A stretch of 64,000 bases of DNA from Ylistrum balloti (Eukaryota), in NCBI RefSeq assembly GCF_031769215.1, contig NW_026782609.1, positions 186,001 to 250,000 on the forward strand, written 5' to 3'. Under the pieces are notes generated by a model. That model saw only the letters and a program-made list of their open reading frames with translations. It had not been told where the DNA came from and did no database searches. Shown here piece after piece: positions 49,401-64,000 of this stretch (position 1 is its first letter; every line of letters starts with the position of its first letter). Position numbers and translations under genes: made by a program.

Positions 49401-52400
49401 ATATCAGTAGATCTCTACCATGTTTGTGTGAGGTTGATATAAGATCTCTACCATGTATGTGTTAGGTTGATATAAGATCTATACCACTCTACCATGTATG
49501 TAGGAGGTTGATATAAGATCTGTACCACGCTACCATGTATGTGGTAGGTTGATACAAGATCTGTACCACTCTACCATGTATGTGGGAGGTTGACATAAGA
49601 TCTATTCCACTCTACAATGTATGTGGAAGGTTGATATAAGATCCCTACCACTATACCATGTATGTGGGAGGTTGATATAAGATCCCTACCACTCTACAAT
49701 GTATGTGGAAGGTTGATATAAGATCCCTACCACTCTACAATGTATGTGGAAGGTTGATATAAGATCTCTACCACTCTACCATGTATGTGGGAGGTTGATA
49801 TAAGATCTCTACCACTCTACCATGTATGTGGGAGGTTGATATAAGATCTCTACCACTCTACCATGTATGTGGGAGGTTGATATAAGATCTCTACCACTCT
49901 ACCATGTATGTGGGAGGTTGATATAAGATCCCTACCACTCTACAATGTATGTGGGAGGTTGATATAAGATCCCTACCACTCTACAATGTATGTGGGAGGT
50001 TGATATAAGATCTCTACCACTCTACCATGTATGTGGGAGGTTGATATAAGATCTCTACCACTCTACCATGTATGTGGGAGGTTGATATAAGATCTCTACC
50101 ACTCTACCATGTATGTGGGAGGTTGATATAAGATCCCTACCACTCTACAATGTATGTGGGAGGTTGATATAAGATCTCTACCACTCTACCATGTATGTGG
50201 GAGGTTGATATAAGATCTCTACCACTCTACAATGTATGTGGGAGGTTGATATAAGATCTCTACCACTCTACCATGTATGTGGGAGGTTGATATAAGATCT
50301 CTACCACTCTACCATGTATGTGGGAGGTTGATATCTCTACCACTCTACCATGTATGTGGGAGGTTGATATAAGATCCCTACCACTCTACAATGTATGTGG
50401 GAGGTTGATGTATGTATAAGATCTCTACCACTCTACAATGTATGTGGGAGGTTGATATAAGATCCTACCACTCTACAATGTATGTGGGAGGTTGATATAA
50501 GATCTCTACCACTCTACAATGTATGTGGGAGGTTGATATAAGATCTCTACCACTCTACAATGTATGTGGGAGGTTGATATAAGATCTCTACCACTCTACC
50601 ATGTATGTGGGAGGTTGATATAAGATCTCTACCACTCTACCATGTATGTGGGAGGTTGACATAAGATCTCTACCACTCTACCATGTATGTGGGAGGTTGA
50701 CATAAGATCTCTACCACTCTACCATGTATGTGGGAGGTTGACATAAAATCCCTACCACTCTACCATGTATGTGGGAGGTTGATATAAGATCCCTACCACT
50801 CTACAATGTATGTGGTAGGTTGATATAAGATCCCTACCACTCTACAATGTATGTGGGAGGTTGATATAAGATCTCTACCACTCTACCATGTATGTGGGAG
50901 GTTGATATAAGATCTCTACCACTCTACCATGTATGTGGGAGGTTGATATAAGATCTCTACCACTCTACCATGTATGTGGGAGGTTGATATAAGATCTCTA
51001 CCACTCTACCATGTATGTGGGAGGTTGATATAAGATCCCTACCACTCTACAATGTATGTGGGAGGTTGATATAAGATCCCTACCACTCTACAATGTATGT
51101 GGGAGGTTGATATAAGATCTCTACCACTCTACCATGTATGTGGGAGGTTGATATAAGATCTCTACCACTCTACCATGTATGTGGGAGGTTGATATAAGAT
51201 CTCTACCACTCTACCATGTATGTGGGAGGTTGATATAAGATCCCTACCACTCTACAATGTATGTGGGAGGTTGATATAAGATCTCTACCACTCTACCATG
51301 TATGTGGGAGGTTGATATAAGATCTCTACCACTCTACAATGTATGTGGGAGGTTGATATAAGATCCCTACCACTCTACCATGTATGTGGGAGGTTGATAT
51401 AAGATCTCTACCACTCTACCATGTATGTGGGAGGTTGATATAAGATCCCTACCACTCTACAATGTATGTGGGAGGTTGATATAAGATCCCTACCACTCTA
51501 CCATGTATGTGGGAGGTTGATATAAGATCTCTACCACTCTACAATGTATGTGGGAGGTTGATATAAGATCTCTACCACTCTACAATGTATGTGGGAGGTT
51601 GATATAAGATCTCTACCACTCTACCATGTATGTGGGAGGTTGATATAAGATCCCTACCACTCTACAATGTATGTGGGAGGTTGATATAAGATCTCTACCA
51701 CTCTACAATGTATGTGGGAGGTTGATATAAAGATGATAGACACTTGTCAAGATGTATTAAATCTTGATATCTACAGTTTGTCAATGGTAAGAAGAAGAGT
51801 CTGCCTTGTGTGATTGAGTGTAATGCAGTTCTGGAGCAAGGGTTCCTGGCATTTTTGTTGGATGCTTATCCGGCTTACCATGGACCGTCAAACAATAACA
51901 CCAAGGAATATGCGGTGAGTTGGATCCGCAGACATTTCAAGTCATTTCTCATTATTGAAGGTAAGATCAATGTCATGTGGATCAGCATTTTTTTTACATC
52001 ACCTGAGACAACGTCTCATGGTGACCTATTACAATTGCCTTTTGTCAGGCATCGTGTGTGGTAAACTTGTAGACTTGTAGACTTCTTCTGGACAGACTCC
52101 TGAACCGATTTCAATGAAATTTTGCAGAAACTTTCCTTGGCAAATGTTGCACCAAAAGTTTAAATCAAATGGTCCCTACTCCCAAGGAGATATGAGGGGA
52201 GGGGTTAAAATGGTAAATTGTTTGAAACTTTAATAATCTTCTTCTCAAAACCCAGGTATAATAGAATCAAAGAACTTAGTGAATGAATGACCTTGACCAG
52301 CTTTCAAGGTTATAGGAGTCATATGTGTTGAAATCTTTAAACATAAACAGCTTCTTTTCAATAACCAAAAGGCCCAGGGTGCTGATATTGGGCCTGTAAC

Positions 52401-58740: not shown

Positions 58741-60039
58741 TCAACAGATTTTTCTGCTGCTTCAGAGAGGTAGCTATATGTCCTTATCTTGGTCTTTCTA
58801 ACATACAATATCACCATACACTGATATTTTAATTTGATGCCTGGCATCACTCTAAAAGTAAAATTAATTTTGTTTTTTTAATTGATTTAAGTCTGAACTG
58901 AACTAGTTTATTTCCAGTATTACAAAGGATATGTTATATACAGCAATGACAACCTCAAAGTTAATAAGGCCAGTATCACATTCACATGGAAAGGACTGTA
59001 TAATCCAGTATATAGAATCTCGACAGGATGACAATGATTATGTAAACTAAAATAAACTAAATCTCAACATGGAGGGAATGTAACCACTAAATTTAGTGTG
59101 TGATACACTACATCTCAACATGGAGGGAACGTAACCACTAAATTTAGTGTGTAATACACTACATCTCAACATGGAGGGGATCTTAGTGTGTAACTAGTCT
59201 TTAATAATGTATGTTTATGTGTGACATTCTTTCATCATTAAAGAAATTTATGTGCTATTAATGTATATCAGGTAGGATTTACCAGAAGATAGGATACATA
59301 TTATATATATATATATATATAGTGCAAATATGGTTAATTCTCCATGTCCAGAAAACATATGACGTCACTATTGAACGTCATTGTTCATGAAGTCTCAATT
59401 GTATCTATGTACACAATGTAAAACATCTGAAGAAGAAATGAAAGCGCTTATGTTTTACAGCTCATCGAGTTTTCCAGTTTTTCTATTTTTTATATACATA
59501 CCTATATATATATATATATATGTATTGTTTGTCAAATGAAGATTAAAATTCACCAGATTTACATTATCGTTCTTCACTGAATCATTTAAACAAAGTATTA
59601 ATCACCATTTTTTTTTATTTATTGACACAATAAACAGATTATATGAAATAATGGAGATACAATGTAAGATGAACTGGTCACTATACACATTAAACCAGAA
59701 ATTTTAGACATCAGATCTACATTCCAGACACGCTGGTCTCAATACAACAGTACAGGAATGATTTAGGTCCCTCTAGTTTTGTAAGTTGTGGGAGATCATT
59801 ATAGATCAAATAGCACAAACTAAAGAACAAACATATTAAGGGCCCCACAATGTTGTACTTTCTTATTTAACCAACTACTTGTCTTTACATAAAATATACA
59901 CCTTGCTTTGTTGAATGTCCTCGAATTGTGGGTAATCCATACACACAATTGTACTACAACACAATCTGATATAAAGATTAACTACACGCAGTCTAGATTA
60001 CACATTCACCATGTAACCATTTTACAATATACTTGTCTC

Positions 60040-60830
60040 CCATAATACAACTGTCCCCTCCCACAATCCTCTTGTCTCCCACAATACAAATGTCCCCTTC
60101 CACAATCCTCTTGTCGCCCACAATATAACTGTCCCCTCCCACAATCCTCTTGTCTCCCACAATACAACTGTCCCCTCCCACAATCCTCTTGTCTCCCACA
60201 ATACAACTGTCCCCTCCCACAATCCTCTTGTCTCCCACAATACAACTGTCCCCTCCCACAATCCTCTTGTCTCCCACAATACAACTGTCCCCTCCCACAA
60301 TCCTCTTGTCTCCCACAATACAACTGTCCCCTCCCACAATCCTCTTGTCTCCCACAATACAACTGTCCCCTCCCACAATCCTCTTGTCTCCCACAATACA
60401 ACTGTCCCCTCCCACAATCCTCTTGTCTCCCTCAATACAACTGTCCCCTCCTACGATCCTCTTGTCTCCCACAATACAACTGTCCCCTCCCACAATCCTC
60501 TTGTCTCCCACAATATAACTGTCCCCTCCTACGATCCTCTGGTCTCCCACAATACAACTGTCCCCTCCCACAATCCTCGTCTCCTTCTACAGTACTTTGG
60601 TCAACCACAGTCCTCTTGTTGCCTTCTTTAGTACTTTGGTCAACCACAATCCTTGTCTCCTTCTACAGTACTTTGGTCAACCACAATCCTCGTCTCCTTC
60701 TACAGTACTTGGGTCAACCACAATCCTCTTGTTGCCTTCTATAGTACTTGGGTCGTCCACAATCCTCTTGCCACCTTCTACAGTACTTGGGTCATCAACA
60801 ATCTTTCTGTTTCCTCCTACAGTACTTCGG
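60040..60830. repeat. 39-bp tandem repeat and a related ~37-39-bp array downstream of the DPF stop (probable 3' UTR)
   Basis: tcctcttgtctcccacaatacaactgtcccctcccacaa to about 60580, then ccacaatcctcgtctccttctacagtactttggtcaa. Confidence 0.95.
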
Positions 60831-61000
60831 TAAGACACAATCTTCTTATTTCCTTAAATATACATATGTCTAATAAGACATTACAATCCCACAAAACATG
60901 TGTCTACCACAATCCTCTTGTCGCCTTCCTCCACACAGGGTGTGTAACATCAGAACATAATTCTTGTCAGTCTCACCAACAAATATTCCACGACTTCATA

Positions 61001-64000
61001 TCATTGCATCCCTGCTGGTTTCTTCCCACCATGGAATTCTTCAATACACAAATGACAACTCCAATTGCCTGAAAAGAGTAAACCATACACAAATGTAACA
61101 ACACATTTGCCTGAAAAGAGTAAACCATACACAAATGTAACAACACATTGTTGGACAACAAAATGTGGTTCAGTGAGAGATTGGATGAGGTTAATACATG
61201 TAATATTGGAAATACTGGAATCTACTTACACTCTGGAGGTTCAGTGAGAGGTGGATTGAGGCAGTACATGTGGTATTGGGATCTACTCACCCTCTGGGGG
61301 TTCAGTGAGAGGTGGGTTGAGGCAGTACATGTGGTATTGGGATCTACTCACCCTCTGGGGGTTCAGTGAGAGGTGGATTGAGGCAGTACATGTGGTATTG
61401 GGATCTACTTACCCTCTGGAGGTTCAGTGAGAGGTGGATTGAGGCAGTACATGTGGTATTGGGATCTACTTACCTTCTGGGGGTTCAGTGAGAGGTGGGT
61501 TGAGGCAGTACATGTGGTATTGGAAAAACAGGAATCTACTTACCCTCTGGGGGTTAAGTGAGAGGTGGATTGAGGCATTACATGTGGTATTGGGATCTAC
61601 TCACCCTCTGGAGGTTCAGTGAGGGGTGGGTTGAGGCAGTACATGTGGTATTGGGATCTACTTACCCTCTGGGGGTTCAGTGAGAGGTGGGTTGAGGCAG
61701 TACATGTGGTATTGGGATCTACTTACCCTCTGGAGGTTCAGTGAGAGGTGGGTTGAGGCAGTACATGTGGTATTGGGATCTACTTACCCTCTGGGGGTTC
61801 AGTGAGAGGTGGGTTGAGGCAGTACATGTGGTATTGAGGAGTACATGTGGTACTTACTTACCCTCTGGGGGTTCAGTGAGAGGTGGGTTGAGGCAGTACA
61901 TGTGGTGAGATTGGGCAGTACATGTGGTATTGGGATCTTACCCTCTGGGGGTTCAGTGAGAGGTGGGTTGAGGCAGTACATGTGGTATTGGGATCTACTT
62001 ACCCTCTGGGGGTTCAGTGAGAGGTGGGTTGAGGCAGTACATGTGGTATTGGGATCTACTTACCCTCTGGGGGTTCAGTGAGAGGTGGGTTGAGGCAGTA
62101 CATGTGGTATCCCCTGTCACAGTCATCACAAAACAGCAGCTGCTCCTGTCGTGTACAAAACAAATATATTAAAACCAATCCCTTACTAAATGTATAAAAT
62201 GTAAAACGAGAACGTGTGACATTCAACGAATAGGAAAAATACCTGTCAATGAACAATGTAGTGTCAGAAATTCAACTGATATCTGTAATATATGTTAAGG
62301 TTAACATTTACACCTGGTACACAAACCAGTGTATACTTAAATCATTGTCAAAGGTGTCACACAGTCCACAGGATTTACACCTGGTACACAAACCAGTGTA
62401 TACTTATATCATTGTCAAAGGTGTCACACAGTCCACAGGATTTACACCTGGTACACGAACCAGTGTTTACTTACATCATTGTCAAAGGTGTCACACAGTC
62501 CACAGGATTTACACCTGGTACATGAACCAGTGTATTCTTACATCATTGTCAGAGGTGTCACAAAGTCCACAGGATTTACACCTGGTACATGAACCAGTGT
62601 ATTCTTACATCATTGTCAAAGGTGTCACACAGTCCACAGGATTTACACCTGGTACACGAACCAGTGTATTCTTACATCATTGTCAGAGGTGTCACAAAGT
62701 CCACAGGATTTACACCTGGTACACAAACCAGTGTATACTTACATCATTGTCAGAGGTGTCACACAGTCCACAGGATTTACACCTGGTACACAAACCAGTG
62801 TATACTTACATCATTGTCAGAGGTGTCACACAGTCCACAGGATTTACACCTGGTACACAAACCAGTGTATACTTACATCATTGTCAGAGGTGTCACACAG
62901 TCCACAGGATTTACACCTGGTACACAAACCAGTGTATACTTACATCATTGTCAAAGGTGTCACAAAGTCCACAGGATTTACACCTGGTACACGAACCAGT
63001 GTATACTTAAGTCAATGTCAGAGGTGTCACACAGTCCACAGGATTTACACCTGGTACACAAACCAGTGTATACTTAAGTCAATGTCAGAGGTGTCACACA
63101 GTCCACAGGATTTACACCTGGTACACAAACCAGTGTATACTCAAGTCAATGTCAGAGGTGTCACACAGTCCACAGGATTTACACCTGGTACACAAACCAG
63201 TGTATACTTACATCATTGTCAGAGGTGCCACACAGTCCACAGGATTTACACTCAATACACTGCCAAGGATATTTCTTCACAGACACGATCATATTGTTGG
63301 TGAACTGCAGACAAGTTGGATGACCTGACAAAGAAGACATATCAATTTGATTCACTGAGTGATAAGACCTTTATAACAAGAGTTGTTTAAGAACAACGTA
63401 GCACACTTATTGATGACATATTTCATATCAATACAACCCCTTTTGGACCCCATACATATGAAAAACATTGTTCAACATATTGCTAATGATTCATATTAAT
63501 GCTTGAACTATTTAATTATCAGCTGTGTATTGACATCTTTGACCCAGTACTGCTTATATATCTTTAACATTTTAAGTTGGGATGCCCTCATTGCTAGAGT
63601 GACTAAATAAGTCCACCCTATTCCCTAATAAACAGGCTATAAACCATTAAATAAAGGGCCATAACTCTATGTAAAGCAAGGTACAAAGCCTCATTAGTGT
63701 CACACACCAAACAATATTTGATTTAGGTGGGAACAGTGTATAGGCATGTATCCATTGAAAAGCTGCAGTCATAGTCTTAACAGGAATGAACCCAGTGATT
63801 ACGATATATCAAATTTACTTTCTCAGATTTATTTAAAGTGAAGTACCGCCTGTTTAAAGTACTGACTGTTTAATAGGTTAAATGATGACAGTATTTACCT
63901 GATCTTCCACAGTCACTACAGGAAACTAACTCCTCTGGCTGATTACTCTTTTTGTTCTCCAAGGAGTCCCCCAGACAGAAGTCACAATAGTTATTGGCAG
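61001..64000 (-). CDS. DPF2: DPF/d4-family (ubi-d4/requiem, BAF45) double-PHD protein, last four exons; gene continues off the right edge
   Basis: Exons 64000-63899 ([11 protein letters not shown]...[12 protein letters not shown]), 63324-63212 (GHPTCLQF...[18 protein letters not shown]), 62145-62064 ([27 protein letters not shown]) and 61068-61001 ([12 protein letters not shown]...MQ*). The DPF1/2/3 paralog cannot be resolved; probably the single invertebrate d4 gene. Confidence 0.93.
61150..62063 (-). repeat. 61-bp array made of the DPF exon 3' end plus 5' splice site
   Basis: Minus-strand unit TACCACATGTACTGCCTCAACCCACCTCTCACTGAACCCCCAGAGG|gtaagtagatcccaa. Confidence 0.97.
62305..63211 (-). 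repeat. 67-bp array made of the DPF exon 3' end plus 5' splice site
   Basis: Minus-strand unit TGTAAATCCTGTGGACTGTGTGACACCTCTGACAATGAT|gtaagtatacactggtttgtgtaccagg. Confidence 0.97.

Follow-up and report, generated by a model that had tools for sequence, protein, structure and literature searches.

A minisatellite spanning a splice donor makes up most of an intron in the DPF gene of the scallop Ylistrum balloti

Main finding

In the scallop Ylistrum balloti, one intron of the DPF gene consists largely of tandem copies of the end of its own upstream exon together with the splice donor. We analyzed this repeat (array 1) within a window of 64,000 nucleotides (assembly GCF_031769215.1, contig NW_026782609.1, positions 186,001 to 250,000); coordinates refer to the window unless another locus is named, and the DPF features described are on its minus strand. 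Array 1 is a junction-spanning ("mirage"-type) minisatellite, and we consider it most likely a tolerated by-product of local duplication and not a splicing device. It belongs to a kind of repeat that has already been described, i.e. the mirages of amphioxus and the VNTR of human F7 intron 7 (IVS7), and is not a new kind of element.

The DPF gene model

Exon A (63212-63324, true donor GT at 63211-63210) encodes the end of PHD1 and the start of PHD2. In a PDB search it matched the tandem PHD of human DPF3 and DPF2 (E = 1e-16), while a Pfam search with exon A alone gave no match because the PHD is partial in this exon. Exon B (62064-62145, donor GT at 62063-62062) matched Pfam PHD (E = 8e-9), and the coding part of exon C (61001-61068) ends with the stop codon at 61003-61001. 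The spliced translation of exons A to C is the C-terminus of the annotated scallop DPF protein (P0269), whose locus (L004; GCA_031769215.1, JAUZWB010001115.1) is identical to window positions 59000-64000 over 5000 bases. The annotated CDS joins GTSDND to EQLLF and PPEG to NWSCH and has its stop at window position 61001; the gene model therefore uses the first donor of each of the two donor arrays described below and the last acceptor. Multi-stretch matches in a representative protein search were considered as candidates for translated arrays elsewhere and rejected, as they were ordinary PHD1+PHD2 matches or mis-predictions.

Structure of array 1

TRF reported a 67-bp tandem repeat at 62306-63251 with 14.1 copies, 96% matches, no indels, and a score of 1668. 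Read on the minus strand, the unit begins with 40 nt of exon end, continues with GTAAGT, and closes with 21 nt of intron. When the minus strand was cut in register from 63251, unit 0 (63251-63185) contained the true exon end GTGTAAATCCTGTGGACTGTGTGGCACCTCTGACAATGAT with GTAAGT and 21 intronic nt after it. It was followed by 13 full intronic copies (echoes) reaching 62314 and by an 8-nt partial copy, GTGTAAAT. The partial copy, the unique rest of intron A, and the acceptor AG (62147-62146) occupy 62146-62313. Array 1 accounts for 879 of the 1066 nt of intron A (82%). An earlier note on this DNA had described the intron as mostly 13 tandem copies of its own exon end and donor; TRF and the register cut agree with this base for base, and the donor positions that it gave, every 67 bp from 63144 to 62340, are all correct.

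At the donor position, GT is present in unit 0 (63211) and again in units 4-11; units 1-3 and unit 13 read TT, and unit 12 reads AT. Units 1-3 (62984-63184) form a TT-type sub-family (GAC/TTRAGT) with three common substitutions. Units 4-11 (62448-62983) carry decoy donors with intact GT: five read GAT/GTAAGT, so that the 9-mer from -3 to +6 of the true donor recurs unchanged in units 4-7 and 11, and three read GAT/GTAAGA. In units 12 and 13 (62314-62447), the donor G is changed to A and to T, respectively. The register table thereby reproduces the pattern reported earlier, with GAT/GTAAG retained in eight copies (62943-62474), GT changed to TT at 63144, 63077, and 63010, and the last two copies dead (AT at 62407 and TT at 62340). 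Translation also bears out that read-through of the true donor meets a TAA stop inside the first unit; stray use of an echo would probably lead to a premature stop and NMD.

Two further features bear on how the array arose. All 13 echoes share a G-to-A change (G24A) at a position where the exon has G (GGC, a conserved Gly residue); the expansion therefore ran among the echoes and not from the exon copy. In addition, array 1 is flanked by an 8-nt microhomology, with GTGTAAAT octamers at exon position -40 and intron position +28.

As a side observation, each unit in 62314-63184 ends in TTTGTGTACCAG followed by GTGTAAAT, i.e. in an acceptor-like AG and then, further on, a GT. The putative AG...GT pseudo-exon of each unit would be 40 nt long, and its use would shift the reading frame.

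Array 1 in other individuals

Contigs from four public DNA runs (X1, X3, X5, and X6), which belong to three studies, were aligned to positions 60900-63400. Contigs from these other runs cross the edge between exon A and the array in all three studies, and one X1 contig (62083-62368) spans exon B to the last units. The TT-type units were found without mismatch in an X1 contig (63112-63208), the TTGAGT variant specific to unit 1 also occurs in X1 (63112-63172), and the transition from TT in unit 3 to GT in unit 4 is mismatch-free in an X3 contig (62924-63059). Other individuals thus carry array 1, dead copies included. That the array is an assembly artefact, i.e. a repeat collapsed or inflated in the reference, appears extremely improbable, since contigs from independent studies reproduce these edges and variants exactly and the array has an ordered variant structure instead of uniform stutter. 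The one point in favor of an artefact concerns the number of units: short-read contigs break inside array 1, and the copy number of 13 is the figure of the reference assembly.

At 63238-63272, contigs of X1, X3, and X6 match over 35 nt only (3 mismatches) and have unrelated flanks. These matches probably represent a paralogous double-PHD exon elsewhere in the genome.

Two further arrays at DPF splice junctions

Echo repeats affect three consecutive junctions of DPF, two donors and one acceptor. Array 2 (61207-62110; TRF and register table) has a 61-bp unit made up of 47 nt of the end of exon B and GTAAGTAGATCCCA, with the true unit followed by 13 echoes, and fills 85% of the next intron (62063-61069). 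GT is intact in 13 of 13 echoes (GTAAG or GTGAG). Units 1, 4, and 6 match the true unit at 61/61 positions, which makes the nearest echo a 100% identical copy, and live identical donors are located 61 and 122 nt away from the true donor.

Array 3 (61044-61149; TRF and contigs) is a 42-bp repeat of 2.5 copies across the last acceptor, the real acceptor being in the last copy (exon C starts at 61068). Splicing to the upstream acceptor copy, whose AG ends at 61111, would lengthen PHD2 by 14 codons and preserve the frame. One 42-bp copy is missing in X1, X3, and X6 (61064 joined to 61107), which leaves a single clean acceptor, while X5 corresponds to the reference; the acceptor duplication is therefore polymorphic. 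Echoes of an acceptor lie upstream of the real site and would be likelier to be used. This could be the reason that the acceptor duplication has stayed small, in frame, and polymorphic.

Origin of the dead proximal copies

The three copies of array 1 nearest to the true donor have lost GT. Three linked substitutions, all in a stretch of six bases (AATGATGT to ATTGACTT), are common to these copies, and only 1-2 bases distinguish one from another; it follows that GT was lost once and the mutant unit was then triplicated. Adjacent units of array 1 were more similar than in shuffled orders (mean 2.25 versus 3.72 differences, P = 0.00025). Similarity between neighboring units is the usual signature of local duplication, and it is normal behavior for the ends of minisatellites to escape homogenization. 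Most likely, the three GT-dead copies go back to one mutant unit that was locally duplicated at the poorly homogenized edge of the array, and do not represent a selected insulator.

Alternatively, array 1 could be a selected splicing device, in which a pool of decoy donors sends an adjustable share of transcripts to PTC/NMD or sequesters U1 and selection has silenced the proximal copies. In favor of such a device are the strong GAT/GTAAG donor kept by eight echoes, any of which would lead to the stop within the first unit, and the donor G, the sole unit column with three states, which requires at least two independent events. In a test of the GT columns (two minimal events among 12), P was 0.05 for array 1 alone and 0.10 when both donor arrays were pooled; as evidence for selection on GT, this event count is weak and not convincing. 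The single origin of the three dead copies speaks against the device, as do the live identical donors of array 2; proximal silencing is therefore not needed for DPF function. No decoy-using isoform was found among annotated proteins in 90% clusters. Altogether we regard a selected device as very unlikely. Of the two readings of the proximal silencing that had been offered before, selection and one mutation spread by duplication, the linked changes, the adjacency test, and the live donors of array 2 favor the second. The dead proximal copies were probably not selected, although the nominal P value for the donor G leaves room for mild selection against live decoys.

The orthologous introns in other scallops

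We compared the locus with those of Pecten maximus (GCF_902652985.1, LR736838.1; L001) and Argopecten irradians (GCA_041381155.1; L005), a comparison that the earlier note had put forward as a check. The intron that follows GTSDND and GTAAGT is 1593 nt long in Pecten and 289 nt long in Argopecten, and neither contains an array. Array 1 is therefore young and lineage-specific, and its youth agrees with the 96% identity of its units. The conservation that marks a regulated unproductive-splicing element does not extend to array 1 in these two species, which further weakens the case for a selected device. The suggestion that the array works as a dial for unproductive splicing thus found no support, its absence from both species arguing against a conserved dial.

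The donor of exon B has a different history. In Pecten it carries an echo array of 3.2 copies of 110 bp (L001 32426-32796) with the donors GTAAGT, GTAAGT, and GTAAAAGT. The arrays of Ylistrum and Pecten have the same left boundary base, ATACCACATG, 47 nt into the exon. In Argopecten, about 10 decayed echoes occur at about 21380-21950 of L005; here, a 55-bp array of 7.5 copies shows a change from GAGGGTAAGTCT to GAGTGCAGGTCT, and the site further includes a single GAGGATAAGT copy as well as an intact CCCTGAGGGTAAGT copy at its far end. With echo arrays at the exon B donor in three genera, this site is either old or recurrently hit, and the identical boundary in Ylistrum and Pecten would favor one origin with later turnover of units. 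The Argopecten orthologue has canonical junctions in Logan mRNA contigs, in line with use of the authentic splice sites.

Compared with the window (AAATATCCTTGGCAG), DPF exon A of Pecten carries an extra C at L001 30729-30735 (AAATACCCCTTGGCAG). This C puts the exon out of frame with the annotated protein and is probably an assembly indel.

Relation to known repeats

Repeats of this kind have been described as mirages in amphioxus, in Adh3 and the globin genes BflGb6 and BflGb9 (Ebner et al. 2010, PMC3087553, citing Canestro et al. 2002). As in amphioxus, the outermost unit of the DPF repeats coincides with the real intron/exon boundary, and tandem duplications of this type occur on the donor as well as the acceptor side; in array 1, the units run head to tail, their length of 67 bp (14.1 copies, 96%) lies within the 10-160 bp of mirages, and the edge unit contains the genuine junction of exon A and its intron together with the donor. 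The units measure tens of bp and many copies retain AG or GT, copy number is unstable (seen here for the 42-bp acceptor array), and neighboring units evolve in concert while edge units diverge. Divergent edge units were likewise noted in amphioxus, where normal splicing was reported to be undisturbed (PMC3087553). The scallop case differs in its host, a bivalve mollusc and not a cephalochordate, and in that normal splicing was reported for amphioxus but is here based on the gene model. Moreover, three consecutive junctions of one gene are involved in DPF, and the donor arrays make up 82-85% of their introns.

The second known system is the 37-bp VNTR in intron 7 of human F7, in which only the most upstream of several identical donors is used although the others are not repressed (Borensztajn et al. 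2006, PMC1557585). The 37-bp unit is present 5-9 times in F7, a gene whose splicing was analyzed by means of 50 constructs (PMC1557585). In both genes, the first monomer spans the exon/intron junction, so that the authentic donor is followed by several sequence-identical pseudo-donors; in DPF, these are represented by the 9-mer matches in array 1 and the 61/61 matches in array 2. In DPF, by contrast, a 67-bp and a 61-bp unit each occur in 13 copies, some of the decoys are mutated, and the arrays are described at the level of genomic sequence. Both can serve as a model for the choice of 5′ splice sites. The idea that the array is a natural test of donor choice is accordingly sound but not new, the F7 VNTR being that model already (PMC1557585). 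A limited text search yielded no paper on such arrays in scallops.

Array 1 may also be compared with poison exons, regulated unproductive splicing, and intron retention mediated by decoy exons, with which it shares that use of an echo donor or of the 40-nt pseudo-exon would bring in a premature stop. Regulated cases known so far are conserved and have transcript support, whereas array 1 is lineage-specific and a matter of genomic sequence.

DPF is a clean natural case in which many identical donors compete for one acceptor; the gene is deeply conserved, and a wrong choice of donor would destroy its PHD2 finger. It combines three states in one gene: (i) a young array with dead proximal copies; (ii) an array at an older site with live identical copies; and (iii) a polymorphic in-frame duplication of an acceptor. 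Given RNA data, the DPF arrays could be used to test outside mammals whether the first donor wins, as in the scanning model for F7. They also illustrate that minisatellite expansion can lengthen short introns five- to seven-fold.

Proposed origin of the arrays

We propose that a 67-bp segment astride the boundary of exon A and its intron was tandemly duplicated, probably by a microhomology-mediated event between the two GTGTAAAT octamers, and that the duplicated copy then expanded through slippage or unequal exchange among the intronic copies. This would have taken place in a region of the genome in which about 30% of the window is minisatellite with units of 20-70 bp. The ancestral intron A would have been short (about 195 nt), and a random 67-bp seed would have had a chance of about 25-35% to span the donor. 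In a null model with pre-expansion introns of about 195 and 152 nt, donor-spanning seeds made up 25-39% of the tolerated placements, and two donor-anchored arrays are therefore unsurprising. Structure-driven slippage was considered and rejected, as DNA folds of two-unit stretches from both donor arrays and both strands gave z values from -0.2 to +0.7.

The arrays would be tolerated because the authentic, most upstream donor, which alone is contiguous with the full exon, keeps the message intact, as in F7; such arrays would not be tolerated inside an exon. According to the annotated CDS and the experiments on human F7, the first donor would be spliced to the acceptor at 62146, and the echoes would leave with the intron. 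Exclusive use of the first donor is suggested by the gene model and by analogy.

A different view would be that donor regions of scallops are mutational hot spots for the seeding of minisatellites, e.g. through a replication problem linked to transcription or splicing, and that donor arrays exceed what random duplication and selection would produce. The exon B arrays in three genera, with units of 61 bp in Ylistrum, 110 bp in Pecten, and 55 bp in Argopecten, are compatible with this view, and two of about seven large arrays in DPF begin in an exon end. The shared left boundary in Ylistrum and Pecten, however, fits one old origin followed by turnover better than recurrent seeding, and short ancestral introns alone predict the proportion of donor-spanning seeds given above. 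Other arrays in the gene and the window are not anchored at junctions, and the DNA secondary structure of the units does not stand out (z about 0). We therefore judge hot spots at donors to be unlikely. Nonetheless, two donors and one acceptor at three consecutive junctions, taken together with the exon B arrays in three genera, could reflect a junction-linked mutational bias rather than random seeding. A more specific version, in which donor junctions are preferred seeding sites through duplication coupled to transcription or splicing, the exon B arrays arose independently in the three genera, and array 1 is a fresh example, seems to us quite doubtful. If true, coupled seeding would represent a new mechanism of mutation by which introns change in size and raw material for new exons and introns is supplied.

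Other minisatellites in the window

Minisatellite arrays scoring at least 150 in TRF occupy about 19 kb of the 64-kb window (about 30%). Their periods range from 14 to 67 bp, with up to 56 copies. The other long introns of DPF have big arrays as well, yet these are not exon echoes. Accordingly, the idea that all arrays in the gene or the window are anchored at junctions was rejected, as those at L004 4918-6213 and at window positions 49446-51730 begin in plain intron. Shortly after the DPF stop codon, 60032-60855 is occupied by two 39-bp arrays of 14 and 7.5 copies, presumably within the 3′ UTR. Short arrays directly after the stop codon are also found in Pecten (L001 34296-34649) and Argopecten (L005 22198-22287).
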